DNA from: Cyanophora paradoxa CCMP329
Taxonomy: Eukaryota; Plantae; Glaucophyta
Length of the DNA: 64,000 nucleotides
Direction of reading: 5' to 3'
NCBI GenBank assembly: GCA_004431415.1
Contig: QPMI01000558.1
Location: 1-64,000, forward strand
Shown: piece by piece, positions 19,201 to 64,000 of the stretch
Layout: each line of letters starts with the position of its first letter
How positions within the stretch are numbered: position 1 is the stretch's first letter
The notes under the pieces: generated by a model
What the model was told of the DNA's origin: nothing
Databases searched by the model: none
What the model saw: the letters and a program-made list of their open reading frames with translations, nothing else
Program-made: the position numbers and the translations under genes

Positions 19201-19823
19201 AGCGCGGTGGAGTTCGTGAGAGACATGAAGCGGATCTTGTCCAGGGCCTGCCCGCGCGGGGAGTGAGGCACTGCTACGCGCCCAGACGAGGGTGAACACG
19301 CGCACGTCAGACGCGTTGGAGATGAGCTCGCGCAGGAAGATTTCCTTCTTGCTGTAGAGCGAGTTGATGATGATGTCCATCAACCGGTTAACCTCCGCCT
19401 GGAACTCGAACTTCTCGGCCGTGGCCTTAATGTTCTTCGCGTCCTTCACGCTGAAGCCATCCGAGACAATCTTGTCCTCCTCCCTGCGCGCAATCGTTTC
19501 AGGCACGTTCGTACGCAAGCGAAACGCACGCGCTGCGCTTCCCGCGCACCGCTGCACGGTGGTCGCGTCGGTCTGAAGGCCCACGCGCTCCGGGTTGATT
19601 GCGTTTTCAACCTTGGCCGCAGTGTCGGCCCGCACCGTCGTAAAGACTGTTCGATTCCGTAAGCATCGCAACGAGCGGCCACGCGCGCCGGGCCTAGCCG
19701 CTGGACTTTCTATCCGCGTCGAACATTCCGGCGCGTTCCAGCCGAATTGGCGGGAGCGCTGTGGGGTGCTTGCTCACCGGCAGCGAGCACGACGACGGCA
19801 AAGATGAACGTCGCCGGCCTCAT
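16242..19823 (-). CDS. HSP90B1: Endoplasmin / GRP94 (ER HSP90)
   Basis: Signal peptide [90 protein letters not shown]-terminal HDEL*. Confidence 0.98.
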
Positions 19824-42854: not shown

Positions 42855-45021
42855 TCACTTGCCCTGGCGGTGGCGGGGCTTGCCGGACTTGGGGGGGAAG
42901 AGGGAACGGGGCGGGGGCGGGGGCGCGCGGAGGGTGCGCTCGCCCCAGCGCTCCTCCTGGAGCTCGCAGGCGTCCTCCTCGTCCGAGTCAGAGTCCGCCA
43001 CCTCCAGCACCTCCAGCTTCCCCGCCCCGTACGGCCCGAACCCGTACGGCAGGTGCTTCCGCGCCCGCGCCTCCAGCCGCGCCGCCCGCCGCGCCGCCGC
43101 CGCCGGGCCCTCCTCCCGCTCCTCCTCCTCCGCCTGCTGCCGCAGCTGGGCGCGCAGGGCGGAGCCCGGGAGGAGGGCGGCGGGGGCCGCCGCCAGCGAG
43201 TTCCGGTCGAGGATGGTCAGCACGAGGACGGGGAGGATCTGCGCGCTGCGTCGGGCCGAGGCGCCGGAGCCGGCGCCGGCGCTCGGGCGGGGCGGCGCGG
43301 GGGCACCTGGGCGGCCGAGAAGACGACGAACTCCCTGCCGCCGGGCGAGATGTGCGAGTCGAACCCCGCGGCGACCGGCTGGTCTGCGCGCCCTCGCGCC
43401 CGTCAGCACAGGCCTGCGCGCGGAGGGGCGGGGCGGGCGGGGCGGGGGCGGGCCGTAGGCCGTGGAGGTGAGGAGGCAGGGGCGGCCCATCAGCGTGCTG
43501 CATACGATGAGCCTGCGAGGCCGCCCCGCCCCGTCAGGAGCGGCCGAGGTGGAGAGGATCGGGCGGGCCGGGGGCGCCGGCGCTGCGGACCGCTGGCCGT
43601 AGCTGTGGGCCGAGTGCGTGGCGCCGGAGGCCTCCCACGCGTTCTGCGCCTCGGAGTAGCCGAGGGCGACGCTGGCGAGGGGCGACGAGTAGATGCCCTT
43701 CCCGAACACCCCCACCGAGAAGCGCGACTCGATGGTCCCCGGCGGCAGCAGACCGTTCCGCACTGCCCGCACCGCCGCCTCAGCTGCGGGCCCTGGGGCG
43801 GGCGGCAGGGGGCGGACCGATGGAGGGCAGGGTGCGGTAGCGCGTGCCTTCGCGGGCCGGGGGCACGCGCGTCAGACAGGGGCGGGCGGGCGGGCGGGGC
43901 GGGCGGGCGAGCGCATGGGCGCACCGTGGAAGGTGGTGCAGGGCTCGGAGAAGCGGAGGCGGCCGTTGGGGGACGGGGCGGTGGGGAAGGCGGGCGACTG
44001 GGCGTGGCCGTAGTGCTCGCGCATGCGGGCCCAGAGGCGGCGGAAGCGGGATGCGAGGTCCGGGCGGAGGACGTTCTCGACGCGGACGCAGACGACGTGG
44101 GCGGGCAGGCGGGCGAGGAGGGCGTGCAGCGGGCCCACGAAGGCCGCCGAGCTCATGTCCTCCCACTCCATCGCCTCCTCCCCGCCCTCGCCCTCCGCAT
44201 CCCACGCCAGCCCCGCCTCCGCCGCGGCCGCGTCCAGCGCCGAGATGCGCGGCGCCGGCGCCGCCGCCGCGGGCGCCGCCGGCGCCTCCTCGACCGTGAG
44301 CGCCAGCTCGGCCTCGGTGACGGAGAGGGGGCGGGGCGGCTGCGGCTTGGGAGCCGCCCACTGGCGGGCGCGCTCGGCGAAGGCGCTCTCGCGCTGCAGC
44401 TTTTCCTCGACGCGGCGCCCGACGAACTCGGAGGCGGCCTGCAGGAGCTCGCAGAGGACGGGCCGGCCCGCCGCCCCGAGGGCGAGCTGCAGCAGCTCCT
44501 CGTAGAGCGCGTCGGCGTGCTTCGTGCTCAGGCGGTCCGCCGACTCGATCTCGAAGACGGGGGGCAGGGCGGGATACTCGGCGAGGGCGATGCTCAGCCA
44601 TGCGCCGCCGTCGGGCAGGCGCTCGCGCTGCGCGAGGGGGTCCAGGCGGACGCGCAGCAGGCCGCTCTCCTCGCTGTACTCGGCGTCCTCGCCGTAGATG
44701 GCGAGCAGAGCAGCCAGCTCCTCCTCGCGGGACTGCTGCAGCGCCGCCGGCCCGGCCTGAAGCGCCGAGGCGACGGCCTCGAGCTCCGCGGCCGCGCTGG
44801 CGTCTTGCAAAAGGTCGAAATCGAGGATTTGATCATGCCCGCCGAAGTCATCGCCCAGCGCGCCGGCCCAGCGGGCGGCGAAGCTGGGGACCTCGCCGGG
44901 ATCCTCGGCTGCCAGCATTGCAAGGCTAAGGGGCTCAGTGCGCCTCCAGATTAGCTAGAGAGAGTGCTTCCAACTCTGGAGATGCACATGACCTCGCCAA
45001 AGTCAGAAGTGATCGCTCCAT
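42855..45021 (-). CDS. RWD domain + PARP-like ADP-ribosyltransferase with H-Y-E triad
   Basis: RWD: REEELAALLAIYGED...YPALPP...GRPVLCELL. ART: FHGTRYRTLPSIVRNGL, FGKGIYSSP...ALGYS, RLIVCSTLMGR, GFDSHISPGGREFVVFSAAQILP. Start (45021 or 44918) is uncertain. Confidence 0.85.
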
Positions 45022-45167
45022 GTGAACCGCATTCGGTAACTGCCGCTACCCGTCCAGCACAGTCCGACCCTTGCACCCCCCAGCAGCCCGGCCGGTGGTA
45101 GCTATTGCACCTTCCAGCTCAGCCTAGGCTAGGTAGAGCGGCCGGACGCCTCGGCCCAACCGGAAGG

Positions 45168-46604
45168 ATGCCCGAGGGCGATGGCGTCACTCCGCTGGAC
45201 CACCTCCCGCCGCTGCGCACCGCGGAGGAGGTGCGCGAGGCCGCCGGCCCGAGCGAAGCTCGATGCGCTCCCGCGCCCGCGGCTGAGCGGCGCGCAGGTC
45301 GAGCGCGTGGCGACCGTCTGCTTTGGAGCGCCCAGACTGAAGGACGGCGTGATTCACCCGACAGCTGTCTGGAAGGTGCGCGCGCAGCTGCGGGTCGGCC
45401 TCGGGAGGCGGCTGATGCCGCGCGCGGGCACGCGCTGCGTGCCGCGCAGGTGAACCCGGCGACGGACGGGCGCCCGTACGGGTCGGAGTACGCGACGATC
45501 CGCATCTGCGAGCACTCCCCGCCCTCCGACCACGGTACCCACGCCGCCGCCCAGCTAGGCCCTAGCTCCAGCGCTAGCGTCGGCGCGCGCGCGCGCGCTC
45601 CGAGAATACGGCCCGCCCGCTCTAATCGGAGCCGACGGGCCAGACTTCTTTCTGCTGAACTACACGCGCGCCTTTGCCGACGGCATCATCATCAGCGGCG
45701 CCATCCTTAGGTCCCGTCCCGCTGTACTCTCCGTTCCGGACCCCGCCCTCACTACCAGCGGGTCAGGGAGGAGCCGCGGCTGCGGTACGCGCTGGCGGGC
45801 CCGGCGGCGGAGGGCCTGCTCGACTGGCGCGTGCGGACCCTCGGCAAGACCGGCCCCCAGCTCGTCCTCGTCCTCACCCGCGGCCAGGCGCCCCCTACCC
45901 CCGTCCCGGCCCGCACCCCGGCCCTGACGCGGGCACAGGACCCGGCGGGTCTCCTGTCGCACGCGATGTTCACCGCCGCCTCGGACCGGCCCATCGTCTT
46001 CGTCTTCTTCTGCCCCGCCGCCGCCGCGCCCCGCCTCGAGGTGCCCGCCGCGCCCGCCCGCGCCGCGCCAGGCCGCCGCTGACGGGGACAGGCGGCGGCG
46101 GCGGAGCGGGAGCTGCGGCACGTGCGCGTGGTCGGCGCGGAGCGGCCCTCCATCGCCGCCGCCGTCGCCTACCTCCGCGCCGTACGCCCCGCGCCCCGCG
46201 CCCCGGGCGGGGGCGGGCCCGATCTCGACGGGCAGGCGGGTGCGGGGCGGTGTCGGTGGAGGCGGGCCCGTCGACGTCGCGGGAGCTCCACGCGGCGCGC
46301 GCCGTCGACACCCTCCTCCTCTCCGTCTACCACGCCCCGCCATCGCCCCCGACGCCCGCCCCGCCCGCCCCACCCCGCCGGCCGGGGCCGACGGCGCGCA
46401 GGTGGTGGACCCGGCGCTCGCCTTCGTGCCCCGCGCCGCCATCGACGACGCCTTCGCCCTCGCCTCCGCCCACCGCGTCGCCTCCCCGCGCGGTCCCCTC
46501 CCGCCCCGCCGCCAGCGCCCCCGGCCCCGCTCATCGCGCCCGGGGCCCCGCGCGCATGCGCAGGCGAGACGTGGGAGATCCGGCGCTACGAGGCCAAGCG
46601 ATGA
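45168..46604 (+). CDS. RibD C-terminal / DHFR-fold reductase-like protein
   Basis: SDH|DFFLLNYTRAFADGIIISGAILR.EP, VLVLTRG, VSVEAGPSTSRELHAARAVDTLLLSVY match the RibD_C pattern (RA.ADAI..G..T.R, VEGGP, VDE..L). Confidence 0.7.
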
Positions 46605-47000
46605 CGGCCCGCCGTCGTGGCATCTAGGGCCTCTCCCAGCTGGCGCGCAGCGGCGGGAGAGATGTAAAGTGGTACATGTACAGAGATTACAGAAGAACAT
46701 CGAATTCGGATCGCAGAAACGACAGATCAAATTACAGCATCTGCCTGGGCTAGTTTGCAACTCGCGAAACCCCCGTACAGGCAAGAAAGGTAGCGCGTGC
46801 TCGTCGAACCTCAGGTCGGAGCACTGGCGAGCGCTCCAGCGGTTCTGTTCGTAGCGCAGGCTCTCCCCGTGCAGAGGGGCGCAGCCGCGCAGCACGCAGA
46901 AGCGGGTGCGAGCTGCGGTCAATCAGCGCCGCGCCGACCTGCGGCGGCGCGCCGGGCACCTGCGCCGGAGCGCCGGGGATTCGCGCATATCGACGCATCA

Positions 47001-48101
47001 ATGTCCCCTTCCCTGCCCAGCGCGGCGGCTGCGCCGCATCAGCAAAAGCCGCGCGTGATCCTGTTCGGTGCGCTGCGGCCCTCGCAGGCGCTGTTTCTTT
47101 TGCTGGCATTTCTTTTGCGGCCTAGCGGAGATTGCCGGATATCGGTGGCGCGACCAAGGCGCATCACCCACGCCCCACGCGGTGGCCGCTCTAATGCGCA
47201 ACCGGGCCACCTAGCGATAGTCTCAGCTTCAAGACGCCGCTTTCACGACTCTGATGCACCCCGCGCCCCTCCAACGCTTCCTGCGCCGCGCAGACATCAT
47301 GTCGACGCTGGTGTACGACCCCTTCTACCGGGACATGCACAGCTTCTTCGGCTTCGAGTCGCTGAAGGACATGATGAAGGAGAAGCACCCCACCCGTGCG
47401 CATGCGCCCGCCTCCCCGCCCCAGCCCGGGGCCGAGCGCGCCGACGCGCGCGGGGGCAGGCTGGCTGGAGTTCGAGCGGGGCCACATCGACGAGAGCAAG
47501 TTCCTCGAGGACTACTTCAAGGACGGGCGCGACTACGACAAGGAAGGATTCCGCCAGCACGTGTACGCCCCGCCCGCCGCGCCGCGCCCCGCCGCGGCGA
47601 GCCGCGGGGCGCGCAGGAAGAGCTGCTACCGGTTCCTGGACGGGATCGAGGAGCTGCTGCAGGAGCTGAAGGATGCGGGCGTCGAGATGCACGCGTGCAG
47701 CAACTACCCGTCCTGGTGGCGCGCGCGCCGGCCCCGCCCCCCCTCGCCTCGCGGGGCGCCCGGGGCCGGGGAGCGAGCGAGGGGCGGGGGCGGGGCGCAG
47801 GGAGATGATCGAGGAGCGGCTGGCGCTCTCGCGCTTCCTCTCGTGGTCCTTCGTCTCGTGCAAGACGGGCGTGCGCAAGCCCGAGCGGGCCGCCTTCGAG
47901 CGGGCGCTGGAGCTCGCGGGGGCCCCACCCCCGGGGGCCGTCCTCTTCGTGGACGACTGCGGGGAGAACGTGGAGGCGGCGCGCGCCGCCGGCATGCACG
48001 CCCTCCGCTTCACCGACGCCGCCAGCCTCCGCGCCGCCCTCGTCGCACACGGCCTCCTCCCCGCCGCGCCCGCCCCCGCCCCGCCCGAACCCGCCAGCTA
48101 G
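47001..48101 (+). CDS. FHY1: HAD phosphatase, FMN hydrolase FHY1/PyrP1-like
   Basis: VILF|DIMSTLVYDPFY, KHPT.WLEFERGHIDE, FKDGRDYD, MHACSNYP.W, WSFVSCKTGVRKP, LFVDDCGENV closely follow plant chloroplast FHY1. Confidence 0.85.
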
Positions 48102-48241
48102 CTGGCCGGCGAGCGCGCCCCCTAGATCCGCCTTTCCCGCTTCGCTCTCTTCTTTCCGCCGCGTGTAAATACTGTATTTCAAATAACAGCAGCATCTCAG
48201 TAATGTTCTAGATCCGAGCAAACCGGCAAATAAGCGCGGCC

Positions 48242-50527
48242 CTAGGAGGCCAGGGCGGAGTGCCAGAGCTCGAACTCGCCGGTGTTGCTGGAGGCGTTCT
48301 CCTCCCACCAGCGCCCGCAGACCTTCCGCTCGCGCATCTTCCCCTCGTAGACCAGGCTATGGAACACCCTCGGCCCCGTGTACGTCTGCGGAGCGGGGCC
48401 CCGCCCGGCCTCAGCGGGCGGCGCCGGCGTGGCTCGGGGCCGCCAGGGGCTGGGCGGCGGGCCTTGAGCATGCGGACGGTGCCGGCGTCGACATCGTAGG
48501 AGCCCCGGATGACGAAAGTGCCCACGCGGTCGCTCCCCTCCGCCCGGACGGTTCGGAAGTACAGGCTCAGCGTCAGCTCCATCTCCCCCGTCTGCCCGCC
48601 CTGCCGCCAGAACCTGCCGCCGCGAGCGCGCGCGGTCAGCGTTGTGGGGCCCGACTCGGCTCGGACCGGGGCGGCCCTCTCCACGCCCCGCGCACCCTTT
48701 CCAGGGCCCCGGGCAGAAGCCCATCTTGAGCTCCTTGGTGTTGGACTTCATCCCCTTGACCTCCGCCAGCTCCTCCCCCAGCTCCTCCTCCTCGTCGTCC
48801 TCCTCGTCGGCGTCCTCGTACTCCGACTCGTCCTCCGCCCCCTCCTCCTCCGCCATCTCCTCGTCCCCCGCCTCCGCCTCCGCTTCCGCACGCGCTGGTG
48901 GCGCCGGCATCGCCGCCGCTGCCGCGGGGGCGCGGCCGGCCCCTGGGGGCGCCGGGGGGCCGGGGGCGGACTCCTTGGCGGCCTGGGCGGGGGCCGGGGC
49001 CGGGGCGGCCTTCTTGAGCTCGGCGGCGAGGGCCTTGAGCTTGGGGGCCGAGGACTTGGCCTTCTTGGCCCCGCCCCCGCCCCCGCCCCCGCCGCCGTCG
49101 CCGGCCATGGCGGCGAGCTCGGAGGCGACGGTGCCGACGATGAGGTGGCGGCGGCTCCAGTCGACGTACTGCAGGCCGGCGAGGTGGAACTTGAAGGCGT
49201 CCGGGATGCCCCCCTCGAGCATCACCGGCACGATGCTGATCCCCTTCTTCATCTCCCGCCGCTCCGCTGCGCGTCGTCCAGCCCCCAGAGCGTCAGCGCG
49301 GGGCCCCGGAGCCGCACCGCGCCGCGGGTCACCGCGGGCGCACCGAAGAGGTCGAGCTCGATGCCGCAGGGGACGGAGGCGAAGTACTCCGGGGAGAGGA
49401 AGCAGACCTGCGCGGGTCCCACCTCGGCCCCGGGGTGGGGCGGGGCCCAGGACGTCGACTCGCAGCGCACCGCGACCTTGGCGGCGTTGGCGGCCTGGGC
49501 GATCTGCGAGCGCCAGCCCTGCTGCCCCGCCTTGATCTCGTTCACGTCTGCCCGCCCCCGCCCCGCTCCCTCAGAGCGAGCGCCGGGGTAGCGGGTGCGG
49601 GGGAGGGCGGGGCCGGGGCGGACCGAGCCAGACGTGGCCGCGGAGGGCGGGGTTCTCCTCCATCTCGCGCACCAGCGGGTGCACGAGCTCCTTGTTGCGG
49701 CTGCTGTACGAGATGAAGACCTCCTTCGTCGGCGCCGCCGCCCCCGCGTCCGGCGCCGCCATCACCGCACCATGGCCCCGCGCCGCCACGGGCGCCACCG
49801 TCGGCGCCGGCGCCGGCGGCGCCGCCTCGTGGCCCTTGTCCGCCGACTGCTGGAACGTCTCGGCGGCCGCCGGCGCCCCAGGCGCCGGCGAGGCCTTGGA
49901 TGCTGCCGCTTCCGTCGCCGCGGACTGCAGCGCGTCCAGCCGCGCTGAACCCGCCCGTCAGCGCCGGCGAGGCGGCCTCGGGGTCGGGCCGGGGCGGGGA
50001 GAACCTAGGATCGCCGAGAGCTTCTCGTCGGCGGCCTTCTGCTGGGCCCGGAGCGCCGCCAGCTCCGCTTTCTCATCCGCCGAGTTGTGGGGAACTACAC
50101 GTACGCGCCGGGATCAGCGCGCACCGCATTCCCCGAGTGCATGCTGCGCTCACCACCGGACGCCATTGTGGGAGCGGTCTGAGCCTTGACGGCAGCTATT
50201 TCTTTCATCTGACCTGCAACGCAAACGGGTCGAATTAGTGGCAGCTGTAGCCAGCCGACGGCGGCTTCAAGCGACGGCGACTACCGGCATGGCCAAACGG
50301 CGTCGGACGCACCCAAAATCTGGCTCAACTGCTCGGACGTCGCCTTCTGGGCCGCCTGCATCTGCTGCTGGTGGCTTGCATTGAGCGCTGGGAATCTCCG
50401 AGTTAGCTGAGAATAGCAGGAGTCACTCGGCACGCGCACCCGCTATCTCCTTGCGCAGCGCCGCGAGCTCTTGGCTGCTGCCCGAGTCGTCCGCGACCCG
50501 CCGGGAGGTCGACGAGCCGCCCCCCAT
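48242..50527 (-). CDS. TIR-1: N-myristoylation motif, coiled coil, TIR (TIR_2-like), acidic linker, small beta-rich C-terminal domain
   Basis: MGGGSSTS..., EVFISYSSRNKELV...VWL|DVNEIKAG..WRSQIAQAANAAK.AVCFLSPEYFASVPCGIEL...IVPVML...LAGLQYVDW. C-terminal GPWKG.WRQ...GSDRVGTFVIRG...KTYTG...YEG...GRW...GEFELW. Confidence 0.85.
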
Positions 50528-50578
50528 CTTGTCCAAAGTGGCGGACGCTCTACCCCGCCTGCTCTTCTTCCCTCCACA

Positions 50579-52313
50579 ATGTCTGGCTTTGTGCTCGGTG
50601 CATGAGCTGGGCGCGCGTCTGCGTGCGATTCGACCTTACGCGCGCCCGCAGGAGCGGCCCTGACCCGCCCGGTGGCCTCGCGGCCGGGCGTGCCGTCCGT
50701 CTCGTGCTCGGCCGGCTGCCCGCTGCGGAGGCCTGCGACGCGTTTCTCCGCGGTAGGGCGTCGCAGGGACATCAGTTTCGGCTTCGGCGGCGGTGCCTGC
50801 CCCTGGCAAGCGTGTCGATCCCGATCCGCGTGACGGCGAGCCCGGGTCGCGTCGCAGGCCGTGGCCTGGTCATCTTCTGCGAGGACAAAGCGTCACCGGC
50901 GAGGAAGACGCAGCCGTCTTCTCCTCCCGCCTCCCCAAGCTCGCCGGCCACTCCTGCCTCTCCTGCAGCCGGTTCGTGGCTCGCGTGCAGCGCCGGACGC
51001 TGCAGCGCTGATGTCGCCGCGCGTACGCAGCGGCAAAGGATGCGGCGTCGGCCTTGAGCAAACGCCTGGAGCGGCTCCTCGTCTTCTTCGCGGACAAGGA
51101 CCGCGACGCGTGGTACGGCCTCGTCGCGGCGAGCAAGAACTGGAACCAGGTGGGCGTCCCGTGCGCGCGCGACGCGCTGGGCGCGGCCTCACGGCGGCGG
51201 GCAGGTGCACGGCGACTTCCTGGACTTCCTGGCGGGCGAGCGGGCCAAGGGCAGCGAGGCCGCCGCACCCCTGGCCGTCATCGAGGCGCTCCTCGACGAG
51301 CTCCCGCGGGTGCGCAGGCCGCGTCGGCGAGGCGCGCGTCGCGCACTCGCGGCGGCTGACGGGAGGGCGTGCGGGTGCGGGGCAGATCGAGGGGAAGCTG
51401 CGGCGGTCGGAGGAGCTGCTGGAGGGGTTCATGCGGACGCGGGCGTCGCGGTGGCGGGAGTTCGTGGAGCGGCACGCGTCGGAGCTGGACGAGGAGTTCC
51501 TGCTGTACGTGAACTGCCGCATCGAGCGGACGGAGGACTACAACGAGCGCCTCGACTACGACGTTGCCCTCACCTCCATCATCGACTTCGCCGAGCTCCT
51601 CAAGGGTCCGCCCCTCCCCGATCCGATCCGCTTCCGCCGGGGCTTTTCCGAGCGCGCGGTCCGCAGCGGAGGAGAAGACGGCGGCGCTGCAGGTCGAGGG
51701 CGAGCGCGGCATGGGGAAGATCGGGGTGCCCGAGGGCGGCGCCGGGCCCCGCTCGCACGGGGACGGCTACGAGAAGATCGACATCGACACCTCCATCGGG
51801 CGGGTGCAGGCGCCCTCGCCGCGGCTGGACCCGACGGAGGCGCCGGCCGGCTCGCTTGGGCGGGGCCTGGAGCGGGTGCGGCGGCTGTACCGGGCGCAGC
51901 CGGAGGGGAAGGGCCTGCAGCTGCCGCTGGAGGTGCAGATCGTGCAGTACATGCTGATGATCGCGGACCCGCTGGAGCGGCGGCTCGCGCTGCGCGACGT
52001 CTTCGTCCCCGACCGCGCCCTCAAGTGTGACCCCGAGCTCGAGGAGCTCTACTCCACCCCCGAGAACCTCCTCGCCGCCGTCGACGCCCTCGCCGAGTCC
52101 TACGAGAAGCAGCGCGGCGACCCGGGCATCCGCAAGTACCTGGAGGAGAGCAACCTGCTCGAGTCGCTCGCCGCGCTCCGCGCCGACGTCCTCCGCTTCG
52201 TCGTCGAGGAGACGGGCGGCCTCCAGAACCCCCCGCCCGGCTACGGCGACGACGACGACGACGAGGGCGAGGGGCGGGCCGAGGGACCCCAGGCCCCCGC
52301 CCCGCAGGCCTGA
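50579..52313 (+). CDS. Plastid-targeted CDB1/At4g37920-like protein
   Basis: Transit peptide MSGFVL|GAALTRPVASRP. LLVFFADKDRDAWYGLVAASKNW, PLEVQIVQYMLMIADPLERRLALRDVFVP, LYSTPENLLAAVDALAESY resemble the family. Confidence 0.7.
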
Positions 52314-52503
52314 GCTCTCGCCGCCTTCCAGCTCTGCCCTCGGAATTCGTGTTTTTCGATCGGTCTGCGGAAGCCTTCCTTGGCTGCGGCGGCGGCCCGT
52401 GAGGCGTCTCTCCTGCTTGTCTTTGTACACAACCGTACTGAATCTGGTGGGGAGTGGGAGAGGGGGATCGGAGCGGGAGCGGGGAGTGGGGGCCAGGGGG
52501 TGC

Positions 52504-53832
52504 TCAGGGGACGAGGCCGGAGCAGCCGCTGTCGCTGCCGTAGTCGTAGCCGCCGGAGGGGCAGGCGGTGGGGACGACTACGGGGCTCGTGCGGGGCCCC
52601 ACCTGCGGGGGCGGAGTCGGACAAGGCGGCGCGGGGCCCAGAATACAAGCACGGGCGCACGTAGTTGACGGTGGTGGGGAGGAAGGAGGGGCCGTCGAGG
52701 TCGAAGACGTGCCACCAGTAGCCCTCGCCGGCGGCGGGGAAGGACCACCGCACGGTCGCGCTCTGCGTGTAGAGCGTCACCTCCACGCCGGCCGAGCGCA
52801 TCGCCGTCGCCGCCTCGTGCGCGTAGCCCGGGAAGCAGTACGGCTCGCCCCCGTTCCACACGCAGTGGTCGGTCTGGTGGACCCAGTAGGAGAAGGTGCC
52901 GTTGGGGCGCTCGGAGGGGAGGGTCCCCGGGGCGGAGAAGGTGACGGTCTCGGGCTTGCGCGTCGTTGAGCGCATGATGTTGTCGACGTCGAGCGAGGCG
53001 ATCATGTCGCCGTTCACGCACGTCCGCCCCGACTCGCACGCCCAGTGCAGCTCGTACAGCGGCTCTCCGGGGCCCCGCGGGCACGACGCGCACGGGAACG
53101 TGCTGCCCCGCCTCCCGTCGGCGCTCCGGCGGCGCGGGGGCCGGCGGGCGGGAGGGCGGGGCGCCCGCACCTGGGCATGACGAGGTGGGCGTCCAGGTCC
53201 TCGGGCGGGCCGCTCTGCCAGCTGAGGACGACCTGCGCGGCGGCGGCGGCGGCGGCGGCTCAGCGGGCCGGCCCCGCACGCCCCCAGGCGAGCGGCACGC
53301 AAGCGGGGCGCGCCCTGAACTCGTTGGGCCCTAGGTTGGTGGACATGTAGAGGACGAGGAGCGGGCTCAGCACGGCCGTGTCCGACAGGTACGCCGGGAT
53401 CGTCACCGTCTGCCCCCCGTGAGAAGGGACGGCGAGCGCGGCCGGGCGGGCGGGCGGGCGGCAGCAGGGGGGCGGGCGGGGCGCACGATGTTGACGGGGA
53501 TGAAGCCGGTGCGGGTGCCGATGGCGTGGTAGGCGCCCGGGGCGTAGCGGAAGGGGGCGATCTGGAAGGCCCCCTGGCTGTCCGTCGAGGTGCTCGTGGC
53601 GAGGAGCCCCGTCGCCGCCTCCACGAGCTGCACGGTCGCCGAGCCGACGCCGACGAAGGTCGCCGCGTTGTAGACGAAGCCCTGCACCGTGACCGCCGCC
53701 GGGGGCGTCGAGCAGTCCGTCCCCCGCCAGCCCCGCGTGCACACGCACGCCCCGTCCGACGGGTTGCAGTACCCGTTCCCCGAGCACGTCGTCGACGCGT
53801 TGCAGACTGCGAGCCCCGGCATCAGCCCGCGT

Positions 53833-53863
<31 letters not shown>

Positions 53864-55314
53864 GGCGGGGCGGGCGCACAGGTCGAGCAGTTGGCGCCGA
53901 ACCAGGTCGAGTCGCAGAGGCAGGAGCCGTCCGCGTTGCACTGCCCGTTCCCGGAGCACGTCGTTCGCGGCGTGCAGTCTGCGCCGCCGCCGGCCGTCAG
54001 GCACGGCGCTCTCGGGGCACGCGCGGATCGCAACAGAAGAAAGCGCACAGGTCGCCTTGCACGTGGCGTTGCTGCCGGGGCGGGGCGGGGCGGGGCGTGA
54101 GCGAGCGTACGCCCCGGGCGCAGCAGGACAAGGGGGCCCGCCCGCGCACCAACAGGAGAGAGAGCAGCTCGTCCATATGACACACTCGTCGTCGGAGATG
54201 GTCACGCAGCTGCCGCCGCCGCGCGGTCAGCGGGGTTGCGGCCCGGACCCAGGCGAGGCCGGGCGCGGCGGGGCGCGGCGCGCGAGGCAGGGGCCGGCGC
54301 ACCCTGCGTAGGAGGAGAACTGGGTGCCGACGGGGGATAGGAAGGACTGCTGGAGCTCGGGGGTGCAGGGCCTGGCCGCCGGGTGCGAGTAGAGGGAGCA
54401 GCCAACGAACTTGCCCGCCGTGATGTTCGTCGGCACCGCCAGCCCGCCCGTGTACGGATTGCACAGCGCTGCGTGCCCGCGGGGTCAGCGCGGCGGTGGG
54501 GGCGGGGGCGGGGCGCGGGGCGCGGGGCCGCACGGAAGTAGGCGAAGGGGTTCTGCTCCTGGGCGGGCAGCGTGGGCGTGCGGGCGCCCTCGATGATGTT
54601 GAACTCGGCCTTGGGCCAGTCGAAGATGCAGACGTCGAGGCACTTGACGTAGATCGACGAGGTGACCCCCACGTCGACCGTGCACGTCGTGTTCAGCCGG
54701 TCCGTCCGCGCCACGTCCGCCTCCACTCCCCCGAACGTCGACGCTGCGCAGCTGCTCAGGCGAGTTGCCCCCCGCGGGGCCTGCCGGACGCACGGCGGAT
54801 CGTGAAGTTGAACGAGTCAGTGACCCGCACGAGCGCCCCGTCCGTCGCAGTCTGCGCCGAGGCAGAGCTAAGCGCGGCAGCCTCGCGAGCGCGGGGAAGC
54901 TGCGAATACAGCACTCACCACTGTGACGTTCGTAGTGCCCAGGACGTTGGGCGCGGGGAAAAGGATGATCTGAGGCCAAGAGCTCAGAGCTCGTTCGAAG
55001 GGGCCCGAGAGCGGGCGTCTTACCGTACGCATGGAAGCGCTCCATCGACTTCTGACTATGTTCTGAGGGGGAACCATAGAAGCGTTGCCGACGGCGACCA
55101 GGAGGTCGATGTTCTGCAGTGCCGTGTCGTTGCTCGTGAGCTTGTACACCAGAGTGTAGCTCGGCCTATTCAAATAGGTCTCCTGATCACCAGCTCGTGT
55201 CATAGTCGTCAAGGCTGCTGCCTGCCCGAGCCATACTACGAGAAGTGCAACTAGCGGTATGCATCCACGGCGCCATTCCGCCTGGGCCACCGCCCAGGGC
55301 GACTTCGACCGCAT
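52504..55314 (-). CDS. Secreted protein A: signal peptide, cadherin/Ig-like domain, Cys-rich region, EGF repeats, carboxypeptidase-regulatory-like domain, YfaP/DUF2135-like domain
   Basis: MRSKSPWAVA...IPLVALLVVWLGQAAA. EGF: CSGNGQCNADGSCLCDSTWFGANC and CSGNGYCNPSDGACVCTRGWRGTDC. Then VTVQGFVYNAAT...TDSQGAF, VVLSW...DLDAHL...SLDVDN...PETVTF...YWVH. Ends GCSGLVP* with no TM segment. Confidence 0.8.
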
Positions 55315-55690
55315 GTAGGGGACCGGCGTGCCGTCGGGTGCGGTCAGCGTCGGCCCGACTCGTTCATTGCCACGGTATCGCCCTGCTCGCCGCCACTCGC
55401 CCACCCGGCTGCCGGGAAGGATGCCTCGATGCTGCTTCCCTGTTTGTCTGCCGATGCTAGCGACCTGCCGCACTGCTGGGCCCTCCCTGCTGGCACCACC
55501 GCCTCCACGTCCGTTCGCCCGAGCCGCACGTCCCCCGCGGTCGCACAGCGTCCGATACTGCACTACACGTTCGCTGGATGTCAGCTGCGGCGGTGCTCCT
55601 GCCCGGGTGCGTTGGTCGCCGTGCTAGCTGGCAGGGGTCGCTTCTCAGGCAGGTTCGGTCTGCGGAGGGGAGGGGGCCGAATCGGGGTAC
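55284..55690. repeat. Copy 1 of a 407-bp near-identical duplication (upstream region + first 10 codons of protein A)
   Basis: Ungapped match to 61378-61784 (offset 6094), 6 mismatches by eye. Confidence 0.97.
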
Positions 55691-55856
55691 AACACCGCAA
55701 GCTTGCAAGCCACTCGCCGAGTTTCGGACGACCTCTTTTAGCGCGTCTTTGCTCGAAGCAACGCAGAAGGTGACGGTTAACGCAGCCTGCTCTTCATCTG
55801 GGCGGTTCCCAGCATCTCGAGTTCCGGCCTTCACCAGCCCTTCACTGAGGCTAGCT

Positions 55857-56674
55857 ATGGGCGCCTTTGAATCGACCCCACGGGCTGGCAGTGCGCCGCC
55901 TTCGCCAGCGCGAGCTGGCCCGGACACCCAGCGAGGATGTTGTGTCCTGGGCGGTCCCAGCGGAACGCGGTCTAATCAGATTTACGTGTGAGCGTTGGAT
56001 CTATCCGTCTGATTCGATTATAACCGCGTGCTTACACAGCCGGCCTGGCTCGCAGAGCCTACTCTGTGTATGACGCGGCGGCCGTCAATCGCCTCGTCTC
56101 GGAGCTCGAGACGCGTGGCTTTGTGGTGCTGTGCGTTTGCGGCTATTGAGCGGCTCTCGAAAGCACGCAGACGAGCCGTGCAGGTTGGAGGAGAACGGGC
56201 TCCGGAACCCGACATTGGCCGGGCGCTCTCACCGATTTACGGACCAGGCTCTGGTCGAGGTGAGCGCCAGCATGCGAAGCTGCGAGTTAGGAACGCTCTC
56301 CGATGCGCTGCAGGGGGCGCGCTTCTTCGTCTACGTCCTGTCGAAGGACAGCATGAAGTCCACGGTTGCGCTCGAGGCCTACCGGCACGCGCTCCGAAGC
56401 AAGAAGGAGATTGTGCCCTTCTTGCTGGAGGCGCCGCGGGCGCTGGAGGCGCACATGCCGCCCGACATCCTCGCCCTCGTCTCTCGCACCGCAAAGCTCT
56501 TCATCGTCGGTGAGCCGCCGCGCGGCCTCGCAAGCGCCCGCGCTCTCTCTCTCTATCCGAGCCGTCGGCCGCCCGCGCGCAGACGCGGCGCACAAGATGA
56601 CGGCGGTGCAGCTCACCGCGGAGCGCCTCGGGGACCACCTCGTCGAGACCGTCCGCCGCGAGCGCGAGCACTAG
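55857..56674 (+). CDS. TIR-2: small TIR-only protein with myristoylation-like N-terminus
   Basis: MGAFES...GCCVL...NQIYV|AYSVYDAAAVNRLVSELETRGFVVL...EGARFFVYVLSKDSMKSTVALEAYRHALRSKKEIVPFLLE follows the TIR_2 beta-A/alpha-A and beta-C/alpha-C/beta-D pattern. Confidence 0.72.
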
Positions 56675-56862
56675 CCGGCTGGAGGCCCGGGGTAGACGCA
56701 GCCGGCCCCGCCTATCCCGACCCGTCGTGCTTTATCTATCTTCTATGTGTCAAATGCCACGCAATTGCAATGTGCGATATGTTTGCCTGTCTGGACACTA
56801 AAAACAGGGATGAGACGTTTGGGAGCGAGGGAACGAGGGGGGTTTCGGTTGGCGAACGGACG

Positions 56863-59800
56863 TCACGGGCAGCCGTCGCCGCCGCCTGCGACAGAAGCCC
56901 ACTGATCGTATCCTGCGCAGAGGCGATGAGCAAGAGCGCAGTGAAAGAGAAACCACGGAAGCGCGGACCAGCCTGGCAGGTGAAGGGGGGCAGCTGGGAG
57001 AGGGGCCGGGGCATGGGCTGCGCGCAGGGGTGAGGGGCCGGCCGGGAGTAAGCGGGGGGCGGGGCGGACGAGGTCGAGGGGGATGATGTCGAAGGTGGTG
57101 CCGTTGATGTCGAAGACGTGCCACCAGAAGGAGGAGACGTTGGCGCTCGCCTCGCGGCTGAAGACGTGCACCAGGCCGGCCGCCGTGTACACGTCGACGC
57201 GCACCCCGGAGGCCCCCATCTGGTTCCCGTTCTCGATCGTGTACGGCGCCGCGCACTCGAAGTACGAGTCGCAGCTGCGCGGCGGCGGGCGCCGCGGGCG
57301 GTGAGCGAGGGGCGCTGCGCGAGGCTGCGCGCGGCCCGGCGCACTAGGTGTACTGGTGGACCCAGTACTCGTAGATGCCCGGGTAGCGCCCGGAGATGGT
57401 CATCGTCTCGGGGCGCGCGCTCGAGGAGCGGTCCGTGTTGTCGACGTCGAGCGTGGCCGTGACGCTCGCGTTGTACGGCGCGTCGACGGGCTTGACGCTC
57501 TTGAGGGCCCAGAAGCACTCGCGGTAGGTCGCCGAGGAGCCGCGGGTGAGGAAGGGGAGGTAGAGGTGGGCGTCGAGGTCGTGGGGCGGGAAGGTGGTCC
57601 AGGACATGACGACGCGGAGCTGGTTGGGGCCGATCTCGGGCGTCAGGTAGACGTTGACGACGAGCGCCGGCGTGGCCGTCTGCGCGTAGAACTGCGACTC
57701 GGGCCACGGCACGTCGAAGAAGGCGGCGTCGTTGAAGACGAAGCCCGGCGCCGTCGCGTACAGCGCGTAGCGGCCCGGCCTGTACCGCCACCCGCCGATC
57801 GCGTAGGCGCCGTTCGCCTGCGTCGGGAAGCCCGTGGCGAGGATGTAGTCCGTGCTGGGCAGGGGGCCCCGGACGGTGATGGAGGCGCCCGCCATCGGCG
57901 TGCCCAGCACGGCGTTGATGACCGTCCTGCGCCCCCGCCCTCGTCAGCGCCGGCGAGGCGCCTCGCCCCCGGGCGGCGGGCGGGCGCACCCCGAGATGGA
58001 GACGGGGGGCGGCTCGGTCTCGCAGCTCGGGCCCGTGAAGCCTTCGCGGCAGATGCAGGCGCCGGTCACCGGCTCGCACGAGCCCATGTTCTGGCACGTG
58101 TCCGTCGCGTTGCAGACTGCCGCGCGCGTCAGCGGAAGCGTGCGGGGCCAGCTACGGGGCTGGCCGCACATCGCGAGCAGTCGCTCCCGTAGTAGTACGG
58201 GTCGCAGGTGCAGCTGCCGTCGCCGTTGCAGGTGCCCTTCCCCATGCACGTGGTGGCAGCGAAGCAGTCTGCGGGGCGGGGGCGTGAGGGCCGCGGCGCG
58301 CCGTCGAATTCGGGAGGCCTGCGCACAGTTCTTCTGGCAGGTGGTGGCGTTGCAGCAGGGGAGGGCGCAGGACATCCAGATGGTGCACTCCTCGGGGGTC
58401 ACCTGCACGCAGCCGGCCGCCGACGTCCACGAGTAGCCGTTGTTCGGCGTCAGCGCGATCGTGTGGACCGACATGTCGCAGTTCTTCACGTTCGGCGGCG
58501 TGTAGAAGCTGCAGCCCAGGAAGCGCCCCGCTGCGCCCCGGCCCTCGTCGGCGCGGGCCGGCGGGGCGGCGGGGCGCGGGGCGGGGCGCGGGCGGGGGCG
58601 CACGGGCGGTGAAGGGGGGGAGGTTGGAGGCGCCCTCCTTGGCGTCGCAGAGGGGGAAGTACATCATCTGGTTGCTCTCCCAGGCGCGCACGTCGTAGCG
58701 CTGCCCGACTCCCACGTTGTTCGGGTACGACGAGGGCCAGTCGAACGTGCACGTGTCCAGGCACTGCGCGCCCCGCGTCGCCACGAGCGCGAGCGGCGCC
58801 CCCGGGGCGGGGCACCCCCCCGCACCTCTATCCACACGGAGGAGTCGGCGGTGCGGTTGACGGTGCACGTCGCGTCGATGGGCGACAGGAGCTCCTGCCC
58901 GGGGGTCAGCCGCGCACGAGAGAAGGGGCGGGGCGGGGCGGGGCGGGGCGGGCCTGGCCGGCGCGGTGCGGGGCCTCGACCTCGACGCCCCCGAAGACCA
59001 TGTCCTTGACGCGGACGGTGAAGGCATCCGAGGCGTACGTCGCGCACCCGTCCGTCACGCTCACGTTGACCAGCGAGCTCCCCGTCAGCGGCACCATCAC
59101 CGTCGTCGTCGTCACGTTGCCCGTCGTCGAGTTGGTCGTCACGTTCTGCGGGACGAGGACCTTCGGGGGCGAGAGGACGATGGTGCGGTACGCCTCCGAC
59201 CAGCCGGCCACCACCGCCGAGTTCACCGGCACCAGCGTCTTGTTCGACGACTCCAGCAGGAGGCTCATCGCGCTCAGCGCCCCCGCGCTCGCCCCCGTCA
59301 GCTTGTACACGACCGTGAGCGAGAGCCGCCCGCGGTACGTGACCTGCGCGCCGGCCGTTGGCGAGGCGCGGCGCGCGGCGGGGAAGCAAAGCGAAGCCAG
59401 GGCAAGCGCAGGGACCTGGTCGGTGGCGCGGGAGAGGTTGGCGGCGCGGGGCCCGACGGTGTAGAGCAGCGCGCCCCGCTCGGGGCCCGTCCCCAGGAGG
59501 CCCCCCACGAGGAAGGCCCCCTGCGCGTCGCTGAACACCAGGCCCCGCGGCTCCGCCGGGAGCGCCGCGCCGCCGCTGCCGTCCACCGAGCCGGCGCCGG
59601 CCCCGACGAAGCGGGCGGGGGCGCCCCCCGCGGCGGCGTCGAGGCTCCAGATGGACTTGCCGGGGCGCCCCCCTCGAGGGCGACGTAGAGGCGCCCCATC
59701 GCGTACGACACGGCCCGCGCCGCCGTCGAGGCGGCCCACTCCGCCGGCGCCGCGGCCACCGTCCTCACCGCCCCCGTCGCCACCTCCACCGCCCGGATGC

Positions 59801-61408
59801 GCGACGAGCCGGCCGCGGGCGTCTCCTGCGGCACCCCCGCTCGCGGGCCGGCGGGACGGAGAGGGGCGCCGGGCCGGGCGGGGCGGGGCGCACGGGAAAG
59901 TAGAGGAAGGCGCCGGCCGCGTCCGCGTCCATCCCGTACACGTCCGCCGCCAGGTTCAGCCCTGCCCGCCCCCTCCCCTCGCTCCGGCGCCCGGCCGGGG
60001 GCACATGCGGCGGGGGGCGGGTGCGGACCGGCGGAGGCGCCGGTCGCGTCGGCGGAGCCTGCGGTGGCGCCGCCGGCGAGGAGGGCGACGGCCGACGTGG
60101 CGAGGTCCACGCGGTAGAGGGCGTGCCGGGCAAGCACGTACAGCGACCCCGCCTCCGCTGCGCCGCCCCGCCCCTCAGCGGCGACCGTCGGCGGGGAGCT
60201 CGCGGGCGGCGCACCCTTCAGGTACAGCCCCTGCGCGAGCGAGAGGCGGTCCGTGCGTGAGCGGGGCCGGGCGCGAGCGAGAGCAGCGCGGGCGGGGGCG
60301 ATGGCGCACGGTGGGACGGGTGAACTGCACGGCGGAGCACGTGGCTCCCGCCGCGTCGGAGCCCCCGCTGCGCCCGAGGCTCAGCCGAGGTCGCCGATGC
60401 GGGAGACCCGAGCGAGCGGACCCGCAGATTGTCGTGACCTCCCCCGACGGTATGCTCACCGCCCTGATCAGCCCCGACGGCGCCGCGTCTGATGCGCGTC
60501 AGCACAAGCACGCAGGGACGGCGCAGCGCAGAGGCGCACCCGAAACGAACGCCAGTGTGCAATCTGCTGAGAGCACGACCCCCTGCGGCAGAGCGCGAGT
60601 CAGCTGCCGAACAGTGGCGCGGGGAGGCGGGTCGGGAGGACGCACGACTGGAGCTCCGAAGCACGCAGTGGTCCTGCGACCGCTCAGCGTCAGCACTGCA
60701 TACAGAAGGGGCGCTCGTTCGAGCCCGAGGGGCCTCGGCCGCACCCATTGCCTGCGCAATCGATACGGGGTCAGGCGCTGCGTGCGGCGTGAGGCGGGCA
60801 GGAGGCGGCAGGCCGCACCGTCAGTCTGGTTTCCGGTTGCGCCGCAGCCGGCGACGTGCGAGATGTAGGCGCTCGCGTTGTTGAAGGGCCTGGGCGCAGC
60901 GATGAGCGCCGGCGCTCGCCGAGGCCCCGGGCGGGCGCGCACCCGTCGATTCGCAGCAAGTTGCCGGAGGTCGTCTCAACGGCGAGCGCGAAGTCTGCTG
61001 AGGGGCAGTAGGCGACCCCGCCGAGGGACCCGAAGCCGACGCCCTCGGGGCAGTACAAGCTGGTGGGGAAGATCGTCGTGTTCGCGATGCGGCTCGTGTT
61101 GCCGGTAATGTTCATCATCTGGACGACGCGGCTGGGGTAGAAAGGGACGAAGGGCCCGCCCGTGCTGTTCGATGAGCATGTTGAGCCCGTTGTTGCTATG
61201 CAAGGGCACTGTGTGCAGGCTGCAGGCGCGCGAGATCAGCAATCGGACAAGTGCGACTTAACAGAACGAACGAGTGCTTACCGGGCGGCCTGACAAAGGC
61301 CCAAGCTATGTGGAGCAACGAGGCGAGGAGCAGGACATGTATTGTCCAGCTGCAACCCGCCTTCACAGCTCCTACCCGGGCCACCGCCCAGGGCGACTTC
61401 GACCGCAT
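56863..61408 (-). CDS. Secreted protein B: paralog of A with an extra N-terminal NHL-like beta-propeller
   Basis: MRSKSPWAVA...IHVLLLASLLHIAWA. NHL-like repeats (LYRVDLATSAVALLAGGATAGSADATGASA, AGSVDGSGGAA...PRGL), TVVYKL Ig-like domain, EGF CMGKGTCNGDGSCTCDPYYYGSDC, LRVVMSW...DLDAHL...TLDVDN...PETMTI...YWVH. Probable 1-nt indel near 59665. Confidence 0.8.
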
Positions 61409-61784
61409 GTAGGGGACCGGCTTGCCGTCGGGTGCGGTCAGCGTCGGCCCGACTCGTTCATTGCCACGGTATCGCCCTGCTCGCCGCCACTCGCCCACCC
61501 GGCTGCCGGGAAGGATGCCTCGATGCTGCTTCCCTGTTTGTGTGCCGATGCTAGCGAGCTGCCGCACTGCTGGGCCCTCCCTGCTGGCACCACCGCCTCC
61601 ACGTCCGTTCGCCCGAGCCGCACGTCCCCCGCGGTCGCACAGCGTCCGATACTGCACTACACGTTCGCTGGATGTCAGCTGCGGCGGTGCTCCTGCCCGG
61701 GTGCGTTGGTCGCCGTGCTAGCTGGCAGGGGTCGCTTCTCAGGCAGGTTCGGTCTGCGGAGGGGAGGGGGCCAGATTGGGGTAC
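61378..61784. repeat. Copy 2 of the 407-bp duplication (upstream region + first 10 codons of protein B)
   Basis: Ungapped match to 55284-55690. Confidence 0.97.
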
Positions 61785-62187
61785 GTCGTCACAAGCACTT
61801 GCAAAGCCGGGCCGTGCACCCGCCAGGTTTCGGGCGGGCGTCCCAGCGGTAGGAACCACCTCAGAAACGCAGCTTTATTCTTTTCCGTGGATGCGCGCGC
61901 ATTGTGGACCGAGCCCGCTTATTGCAGATCGAGAGCCGCAGTCTTAGTGCCGGCACGGGCGTTTCTGTCTGGTTTCGAGGGGCTGTTAAGTGTTCTTCTG
62001 TTCCAGCGGTGAAGGCTCACGGCAGGGCCGCTAGATACACGTTTCCGTCGGATACGCCTTGCTTCCCCCTCGATTCCATTCACACCTAGTCTATAGTAGG
62101 CATCCCGCGCGCGCCAGGCGGTTACAGCAGCAAACCAGCTGAGTGAGGGAGCAGTTACGCTGTGTCTCTGCGCGGGCAGGCCTCAAG

Positions 62188-64000
62188 ATGGGTTGCGGTA
62201 GCTCCAGCGCTAGCTACGAAGTTCCGTCGCGTCGCGTGCCGGGAGCGCCGCCGCCGCCAAGAGCTCCGCCAGGGGCGTCGGGTTCATATGCCGACTTCTC
62301 GAAGCCGGCCGCCGACTATCAGAAGCCCCCGAGCCTCGCGCCCGTCCGAGTGCATCCCGAACCACCCGCCAAGCCAACTAAGGCCCCGCAAGGTTCGCCT
62401 GTTTCCGCCGATGCGGGCGCACGCGCCACCCTGACTTGGCCGGCAGCAGAGAAGCCGAGCAGCGAGTCGAAGCCGCCTTCCGCGGCCGTCGTCCTCGTGC
62501 CCATCGAAGCGGACTCCCAGCGCGAGGGGTCCCGGCGGGCGGCGCCCGCGGACGGCGTGAGGGCCGACAAGCCCTCAAAGCCGAACTCGAAGCATGCAAC
62601 AGCGCCGCAGGCTGCGGAGGCGGCGGCCGCGCAGGGTCCCCCGCCCGCGGCAGCTGCGGCCGCCTCCAGTGCGCGGCGAACCCCGTCCGTCTCCGCGGCC
62701 GCCGGCCCCGCCCCGCAGCAGCAGCCGCCGGAGCCCGCGAAGCCGAAGAAGCCCGAATCCTTCTCCATGGCGCCGCCGCGGCACGCCAGGCGCCTGCGCC
62801 GCCCCGGCCCCGTCCCCTCCGCTCCGGAGGCCGCCCCCGCCCCTGCCCCGCCCCGCCCCAGCGGCCGCCCCCGCTCCGCCGGCCAAAGAGGCGACCGCGC
62901 AGCTGATTTCGCTGGCGCCGGCGGCGCCGGCGGCGTTCAGCATCCTCGACTTCCTCACGCCGGCCCCCGCCAAAGTCGTCCCAGCGGACCCGCGGCGCCC
63001 CGCCCCTTGAGCTCACGCTGGCGCCTGCGCCTTCGCCTGCGGCGGCCTCCTCCGGATCCCGCCGGCCCTCGCCCCGGCGGTGACGCCGGCCCCGGGCGCC
63101 GGCGGGGCCTCCTCGGCGGTGGCCTCGGGCGGGGCCGTGAGCGAGCTGCTGATCGTGTTCGCGTCGGTGAGCGGGAACGGGGAGGGCCAGGCGCGCCGCC
63201 TCCGGCAGGCGGCCCTCGAGCGCGGCCTGGCCGCCGACGCGGCGCCCCTCGCCGCCGCCTTTGCCGACCCCGCCGCCCTCGCCGCCGAGCGCCGCGCCGT
63301 CCTCTTCTTCGTCAGCTCCTTCGGCGACGGCGAGCCGCCCGAGTCGGCCCAGCGCCTCTGGGCCTGGCTCTGCGACCCCGCGCGCCCCGCCAACGCCCTC
63401 GCCGGCCTCCTCTTCGGCCTCTTCGGCAACGGGAGCCGCGTCTACGACCAGTACCAGCGCTTCCCCCGCCAGCTCTTCGCCGTGCGCCCCCCGCCCGCCC
63501 CCGCCCCCCGCCCCCCCTCCCGGCTGACGGCGGGGCAGAGGCTGCGGGCGCTGGGGGCGGTGCCGCTGTACGCGCGCGGGGAGGCGAACGAGGCGACGAT
63601 GGAGGCGGACTTCGCGGCATGGGCGGGGGGCCTCTGGGGCGCCCTGGCGGACCCGAAGCCCGTCCCGCCCGAGGCGGCCGGGGACCCCGAGGAGGAGCCC
63701 GTGCTCGAGTGGGAGCTCGAGGCGGCCGGCCCCGGGGCCCCCCTCGAGGCGCCCCTCGACGAGGCCAGGCGCCTCCAGGCCTCGGCCCTCCAGCCGGGCG
63801 AGGAGCTGCTCGCCGCCCGCGTCCTCGAGAACCGCGAGCTTCACGGGCCCGCCTCGCCGGACAGCACGCGGCACGTGGCGCTGAGCCTCCCGCCGGCCCC
63901 CGCCGCCGCCTACCGCTGCGGCTGGTACCTCGGGGTCGTCCCCGAGGCCCCCGCGGGGGCCGTCGAGGCCCTCGCCGCCCGCCTCGGGCTGCCCCCCTCG
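62188..64000 (+). CDS. Diflavin (flavodoxin + FAD-binding) NADPH reductase, CPR/NOS-reductase-like, with MGCGSS N-terminus; truncated at window end
   Basis: ATG GGT TGC GGT AGC TCC at 62188, Pro/Ala-rich linker, LLIVFASVSGNGEGQA, FFVSSFGDGEPPESA, FGLFGNGSRVYDQY, RGEANE...ADFAAW, ENRELH...STRHVALSL. Confidence 0.85.
   Translation, partial: MGCGSSSASYEVPSRRVPGAPPPPRAPPGASGSYADFSKPAADYQKPPSLAPVRVHPEPPAKPTKAPQGSPVSADAGARATLTWPAAEKPSSESKPPSAAVVLVPIEADSQREGSRRAAPADGVRADKPSKPNSKHATAPQAAEAAAAQGPPPAAAAAASSARRTPSVSAAAGPAPQQQPPEPAKPKKPESFSMAPPRHARRLRRPGPVPSAPEAAPAPAPPRPSGRPRSAGQRGDRAADFAGAGGAGGVQHPRLPHAGPRQSRPSGPAAPRPLSSRWRLRLRLRRPPPDPAGPRPGGDAGPGRRRGLLGGGLGRGRERAADRVRVGERERGGPGAPPPAGGPRARPGRRRGAPRRRLCRPRRPRRRAPRRPLLRQLLRRRRAARVGPAPLGLALRPRAPRQRPRRPPLRPLRQREPRLRPVPALPPPALRRAPPARPRPPPPLPADGGAEAAGAGGGAAVRARGGERGDDGGGLRGMGGGPLGRPGGPEARPARGGRGPRGGARARVGARGGRPRGPPRGAPRRGQAPPGLGPPAGRGAARRPRPREPRASRARLAGQHAARGAEPPAGPRRRLPLRLVPRGRPRGPRGGRRGPRRPPRAAPL

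Follow-up and report, generated by a model that had tools for sequence, protein, structure and literature searches.

Secreted-protein paralogues with a near-identical 5′ end in a TIR-bearing stretch of the Cyanophora paradoxa genome

What does a nearly identical piece of DNA mean when it recurs in two head-to-head gene pairs, each joining a secreted protein to a partner that may be lipid-anchored? The question is raised by a 64,000-nucleotide stretch of the genome of the glaucophyte alga Cyanophora paradoxa CCMP329 (contig QPMI01000558.1, positions 1 to 64,000; hereafter the window). Here secreted protein A faces a small TIR protein (TIR-2) head to head, secreted protein B faces a P450-reductase-like flavoprotein head to head, and a 407-bp block is common to both pairs; a second TIR gene (TIR-1) and an ART lie in the same part of the window. 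The first-pass annotation proposed an innate-immunity or signalling module with the block as its shared promoter. If true, this would offer a rare view of how innate immunity is wired in glaucophytes, which branched early in the plant lineage. Such a claim goes beyond the present evidence. We consider this probably an ordinary gene-dense stretch, in which the block is a conversion tract over the leaders of A and B, and the TIR and reductase genes are neighbours by chance rather than parts of a demonstrated module.

The 407-bp block and the genes that begin in it

Evidence for transcription comes from unstranded contigs of three sequencing runs (X1, X5 and X8) whose RNA label is a guess. The joints listed for these runs, at least 15, have GT..AG ends on the minus strand, and every one is missing from the DNA run X15. 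RNA contigs stop at repeat borders, an assembler effect, so transcription starts are not readable from them. The G+C content of the window is 68–83%, and that of third codon positions in coding frames (GC3) is 95–100%. In A, B, TIR-2 and the reductase, the first exon has low GC3 and was set by RNA joints or by hand rather than by the GC3-based models. The block and the two genes that begin in it are placed as follows.

55284..55690, minus strand: block copy A, with the first 10 codons of A, about 377 nucleotides of upstream leader and an upstream open reading frame (uORF)
61378..61784, minus strand: block copy B, with the first 10 codons of B (ATG 61408-61406) and about 377 nucleotides of upstream leader
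52504..55314, minus strand: secreted protein A, about 643 amino acids, 12 exons (model), with its ATG (55314-55312) inside the block
56863..61408, minus strand: secreted protein B, about 1,099 amino acids, 21 exons, from RNA joints and sequence
59661..59662, no strand: one-base deficit (G) in a B exon; an extra G follows 59661 in RNA contigs of X1 and X5 and in one X15 DNA contig

The two copies of the block lie 6.1 kb apart in direct orientation. They are identical at 401 of 407 positions (98.5%), with no indel and with mismatches at 55328, 55448, 55464, 55679, 55680 and 55683, and their borders are abrupt at both ends. The claim that both head-to-head pairs contain the same block thus holds, with two copies and six differences. 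Further copies were looked for, and no third copy was found within the window. Depth in the DNA run is 53 over the block and 21–32 in its flanks, which corresponds to about two genomic copies, so the block is not a repeat family. An independent DNA data set of 2012 has contigs that connect the block with the unique flanks of each copy.

The 30 bases of the block nearest to A and B, read on the minus strand, encode MRSKSPWAVA, with which both proteins begin, and past these 10 shared codons A and B have two different hydrophobic signal cores. Both copies also carry a uORF of seven codons (MNESGRR) in the minus-strand leader, at 55367 in copy A, 53 nucleotides upstream of the main ATG. Copy A is transcribed (contigs 55284-55661, 55284-55668 and 55284-55678). 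For copy B, one X8 RNA contig links the unique left, coding flank with 385 nucleotides of the block, and one X1 RNA contig passes from the block into the unique right (far) flank. Transcription thus extends over most of the block, and the simplest interpretation is that this part forms a long 5′ leader of A and B. A free-standing promoter shared with the opposite genes, as first proposed, does not fit a block that holds the start codon, 10 codons and transcribed leader of A and B. Beyond the block, the ATG of TIR-2 is 167 bp away and that of the reductase 404 bp away.

Outside the block, A and B have diverged far. Exon by exon, their proteins are colinear with 35–55% identity, and their DNA agrees at 73–77% in short patches only. 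A block at 98.5% identity between genes that elsewhere share 35–55% of their residues is best understood as a tract of recent gene conversion that took in their 5′ ends. We suggest that the tract was copied recently between A and B by non-allelic gene conversion and that it would serve mainly as their 5′ leader. The promoters of A and B may then lie at or past the far end of the block, in short unique DNA that each has in common with the neighbouring gene. The block would be a clean case of conversion between old paralogues in which the tract takes in no more than leader and start codon.

Known cases of non-allelic (ectopic) gene conversion share several features with this one: a short near-identical tract in old, diverged genes, abrupt borders, direct orientation and two copies. 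Unlike them, the tract here covers a leader and the first 10 codons rather than the gene body, and A and B differ just downstream, where B has about 330–400 extra residues.

As genes, A and B are tandem paralogues of old standing, and their products are secreted multi-domain proteins. For A, B and the reductase, Pfam was searched exon by exon; TIR-1, TIR-2 and the ART were searched as full-length public models. A runs from a signal-like start through cysteine-rich parts, EGF-like modules and a CarboxypepD_reg domain to a beta-rich C-terminal domain without assignment (motifs DLDAHL, LDVDN and WWHVFD). Pfam matches by exon give EGF and CarboxypepD_reg in both proteins, with two EGF exons in B, which has the architecture of A plus the extra, repeat-rich region after the signal peptide; a feature search of B returned CarboxypepD_reg and nothing more. 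By eye, each N-terminus is charged at first and then hydrophobic over a core of 12–15 residues, and no membrane helix or later hydrophobic stretch was seen in the A and B models, in keeping with the earlier proposal that both are secreted. They are probably glycosylated.

The gene models differ in their support. Exon 1 of A (55024-55313) is covered by RNA contigs and the intron at 54970-55023 is shown; the 3′ exons come from the GC3-based model only. In B, 20 introns were placed, 19 of them GT-AG and one GC-AG; 18 are given by RNA joints or by contig pieces missing from the DNA run, and the two 5′-most by sequence alone. The RNA contigs require two micro-exons of 7 and 16 nucleotides (60745-60751 and 60215-60230) and the GC-AG intron (58895-58953). 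The frame of B is open in two parts of 372 and 726 amino acids, and an in-frame junction needs one more base. The extra G in RNA and DNA contigs supplies that base, so B is intact and the frame break is an assembly error; B was translated in its two parts, with the missing G not inserted. This error of one base is one correction to public data; the other, described below, concerns the first exon of the public TIR-2 model, which is doubtful.

Other identities for the block were considered and set aside. A count of about two copies, with no further one in the window, speaks against a repeat family or transposon, and similarity confined to 407 bp rules out a tandem duplication of the whole 6.1 kb. 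In searches for a structured RNA, Rfam gave no match and no tRNA was found, and folding gave no excess of structure in the block (z of +0.9 and +2.7); an RNA gene or structured RNA was rejected on these results.

Two side observations concern these genes. In X1, contig depth inside the block (55448-55464) reaches 367, compared with 75 in A and 42 in B; the peak is absent in X5 and X8 and may be a short-contig depth artefact or a stable leader fragment. At 56582-56911, one RNA contig of 4,156 nucleotides bridges B and TIR-2, so the 3′ ends of these convergent genes overlap or abut.

The TIR proteins, the ART and the reductase

The genes that were proposed as partners of A and B are the following.

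48242..50527, minus strand: TIR-1 (g18471, P0001), 546 amino acids; the public model agrees with the exon reading
48242-48613 and the 3′ end of exon 48696-49266, minus strand: barrel domain of TIR-1, about 105 amino acids (residues 436-546), from a structure model
55857..56674, plus strand: TIR-2 (g18474, P0002), TIR-only, about 189 amino acids if it starts at MGAFES; from TIR_2 and RNA contigs
42855..44918, minus strand: ART (tig00021126_g18468, P0003), RWD and PARP, 571 amino acids, start MLAAED; exon 43926-44918 at 100% identity
62188..64000, plus strand: diflavin reductase, ending at the window edge; start and first intron from sequence

Each gene named in the first-pass annotation (the ART, TIR-1, TIR-2, A, B and the reductase) was found in its place by Pfam profiles and public models. 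The three public models that match the window carry EukProt names on contig tig00021126.

To judge from its sequence, TIR-1 is most likely a TIR enzyme that is tethered to the membrane and cleaves NAD. It begins with MGGGSS and continues through short coiled-coil exons, a TIR_2 domain (residues 180-297), a linker rich in alanine, proline and lysine, and an acidic stretch to a C-terminal barrel. The public model matches TIR_2 (Pfam PF13676; curated cut-off, 28 bits) with 70.7 bits (2e-19); single exons match weakly (15.3 and 12.9 bits), and the exon-wise matches are colinear. The glutamate of its GIELD motif aligns with that of two bacterial-type TIR NADases, AbTIR (YELD) and Cat1 (CRISPR-associated TIR 1; WDELE), and so falls at the conserved site of helix alpha-C; at the level of sequence, this agrees with the prediction of a catalytic glutamate. 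Coiled coil and TIR together (residues 18-273) fit the profile of the PADLOC candidate PDC-S66 (2.6e-12). Unlike AbTIR, Cat1 and PDC-S66, TIR-1 comes from a eukaryotic gene with introns, begins with a myristoylation-type motif and ends in a barrel; its NADase activity is a prediction. Literature searches returned nothing on TIR genes in Cyanophora.

The C-terminal domain of TIR-1 is modelled as an eight-stranded beta-barrel with high confidence (pLDDT of 93.5). Its structural matches have Z scores of 13.1 to 11: 13.1 for designed barrels, 11.9 for Cap15 and about 11 for avidins. The predicted fold thus resembles the eight-stranded up-and-down barrels of the cyclic-dinucleotide receptor Cap15, the avidins and GID4; identity to these is only 4–16%, and a common fold is no proof of a common ligand. 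A profile of the domain found no sequence-level relative among solved structures. The domain is widespread, with 476 representative relatives, but belongs to no Pfam family, and a feature search gave unnamed clusters.

The relatives of the barrel occur alone, in tandem or fused to other domains. Fusions to TIR_2 occur in a Cyanophora paralogue, in the choanoflagellate Salpingoeca and in Rhodelphis, and in the mussel Mytilus the barrel is fused to a B-box and a TRIM coiled coil. Close matches in shape include small bacterial proteins of Planctomycetota and Verrucomicrobiota. Such fusions to TIR or TRIM parts make the barrel a candidate for sensing or ligand binding in proteins of immune type. 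We hypothesize that TIR-1 assembles via its coiled coil and that the barrel binds a small ligand or peptide.

TIR-2 matches TIR_2 with 37.1 bits (5e-9), and a sequence search against solved structures gave no match. In the column of the canonical glutamate it has alanine, with a glutamate one residue earlier and no indel between the flanking anchors. The earlier description of the glutamate as displaced is therefore correct: the shift is one residue and the anchor spacing is unchanged. We regard TIR-2 as most likely a TIR adaptor that has a lipid anchor and no catalytic activity. TRAM (TICAM2) is an N-myristoylated TIR adaptor of animals, and TIR-2 is likewise a small TIR protein with a putative MG...S anchor and is probably non-catalytic. 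The likeness lies in these features; in sequence TIR-2 fits the TIR_2 profile, and its start is disputed by the public model.

That model has 173 amino acids and starts at MFCSAVSLL. Its first exon (55109-55135) lies antisense within exon 1 of A and is spliced over the whole block to 55926, a splice not seen in the RNA contigs. The contigs instead run unbroken from 55692 or 55695 to 55987, where they end at a predicted donor, and there is no ATG between 55692 and 55857. MGAFES is therefore the first AUG of the covered stretch, and it lies in good context. The RNA contigs prefer this start over the public one, and the first exon of the public model is doubtful. The locus thus has two TIR genes, expressed or annotated, with lipid-anchor motifs, one of catalytic type and one not.

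The ART is a eukaryote-type RWD-PARP. Both domains score over their cut-offs (RWD, 33.5 bits and 5e-8; PARP (PF00644), 32.2 bits and 9.5e-8, with a cut-off of 26.7), and the motifs FHGT, GIYSS and REFVV (His-Tyr-Glu) were seen by eye. A sequence search of the PARP half against solved structures found no relative.

The reductase is of the ordinary NADPH-P450-reductase type. After MGCGSS and a low-complexity region rich in proline and alanine come an FMN (flavodoxin) domain (Flavodoxin_1, 2.3e-14) and the beginning of an FAD domain (FAD_binding_1, 0.0036); the C-terminal half of the protein, where a diflavin reductase would also have its NADPH domain, lies past base 64000. An in-frame stop lies 16 codons upstream of the start. 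Among solved structures, its best matches are NADPH-P450 reductases and the reductase part of P450 BM3 (3.6e-13), and the order of FMN and FAD domains agrees with that of NADPH-cytochrome P450 reductase; MGCGSS and the long proline- and alanine-rich region differ from it, standing in place of a membrane helix. At 62188-62990, about 200 residues rich in proline, alanine and serine follow MGCGSS, where P450 reductases usually have that helix.

The three starts, MGGGSS at 50527 (minus strand), MGAFES at 55857 (plus strand) and MGCGSS at 62188 (plus strand), are all present and fit the G2/S6 pattern of predicted myristoylation; that of the reductase also has Cys3. The start of TIR-1 is that of the public model, the start of TIR-2 follows RNA contigs against the public model, and the start of the reductase is given by sequence only. 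Across the six frames of the window, MGxxxS occurs five times, compared with about eight predicted from base composition (our own estimate), so the motif is meaningful only at true starts.

Immune module or ordinary neighbourhood

Could these genes nevertheless work together? In the module as proposed, A and B would act outside the cell in recognition or as signals, lipid-anchored TIR-1 and TIR-2 and the reductase would be effectors inside, and the block would co-regulate both pairs. Its parts stand up well: A and B are secreted, TIR-1 is of predicted catalytic type, the glutamate of TIR-2 is displaced and the MG starts are there. What does not stand is the link between the genes, for which there is position only. 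A, B and TIR-2 are all present in RNA runs X1 and X5, three myristoylation-type starts lie close together, a catalytic-type TIR beside a glutamate-displaced one is reminiscent of sensor/helper pairs, and elsewhere among eukaryotes the barrel of TIR-1 also accompanies TIR and TRIM parts. Yet the block is part of A and B themselves, as it contains the leader and start codon of each; the genes opposite, TIR-2 and the reductase, are mutually unrelated and begin 167 and 404 bp past it; the reductase is of P450-reductase type and the ART is an RWD-PARP; and the closest paralogue of TIR-1, which starts with MTSWLR and has no MG start, sits on another contig (P0004, tig00000448_g861; EP00741_Cyanophora_paradoxa). 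In X8, A and B occur without the 5′ part of TIR-2: depth is 0 over 55700-56299, the first 600 bases of that gene, although this is weak evidence, as contig gaps prove little. Conversion explains the near-identity of the copies, and a shared promoter that co-regulates TIR-2 and the reductase with A and B is not needed. We therefore regard a functional module as unlikely, with only a small chance that the proposal holds in full. A glaucophyte signalling unit of a lipid-anchored, catalytic barrel protein (TIR-1), a non-catalytic TIR-2 and secreted A and B, with shared leader control tied to TIR-2 and the reductase, seems slightly less probable again.

The block could instead have a regulatory role, as a bidirectional promoter or as a leader for translational control, and its copies could owe their identity to strong purifying selection rather than to recent copying. 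It lies in both divergent intergenic regions, its uORF and first 10 codons are shared, and RNA depth inside it in X1 exceeds that of both genes (367 versus 75 and 42). Against this, 401 identical positions of 407 without an indel, beside adjoining coding DNA that is saturated, far exceed what selection usually maintains in non-coding DNA; both borders are abrupt, and no signal of RNA structure was seen. This explanation is improbable, and one in which a piece of a mobile element was inserted twice, or the assembly is at fault, is still more so. The sharp borders and the intergenic, promoter-like positions of both copies would suit the latter, but the independent 2012 data, with about two copies and contigs to both unique flanks, speak against it, as does the lack of more copies in the window. 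By eye, moreover, no terminal repeats or target duplications were seen at the block ends, and each copy of the block reads in frame into a working signal peptide. Gene conversion between A and B probably accounts for the block, and the proximity of the other genes is best explained by chance in a TIR-rich genome together with selection by the scan, which took in about 1,900 such stretches.

Several points weigh against this conclusion. Three MGxxxS starts fall within 12 kb, compared with about 0.2 expected among 23 random starts (a rough estimate, set against a post hoc count that includes one disputed start), and two TIR genes 5 kb apart are uncommon even in a TIR-rich genome. The block could still hold promoter elements in either direction, as the contigs are unstranded and no transcription start is seen in them. 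We infer gene conversion from the pattern of identity within one strain, and contig depth is no measure of co-expression.

Neighbouring genes

From 42.8 to 64 kb the genes run in the order RWD-PARP, unknown, HAD hydrolase, TIR-1, unknown, A, TIR-2, B and diflavin reductase. A local profile and pattern scan across the 64-kb window found no further TIR-like or EGF-like exons. Two interspersed genes were placed.

47293..48086, plus strand: HAD-type hydrolase, housekeeping-like (Pfam Hydrolase, 1.8e-7, and Hydrolase_like, 1.1e-5, on exon 47718-48086)
51063..52310, plus strand: gene convergent with A, read from high-GC3 exons

The hydrolase confirms, by Pfam, that housekeeping-like genes are interspersed; the gene convergent with A matched no Pfam family. 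Farther upstream in the window, the list of high-GC3 exons shows a many-exon gene of the HSP90 family (16245-19458, minus strand) and a very long, TPR-like, alanine-rich gene (25377-31004, minus strand).

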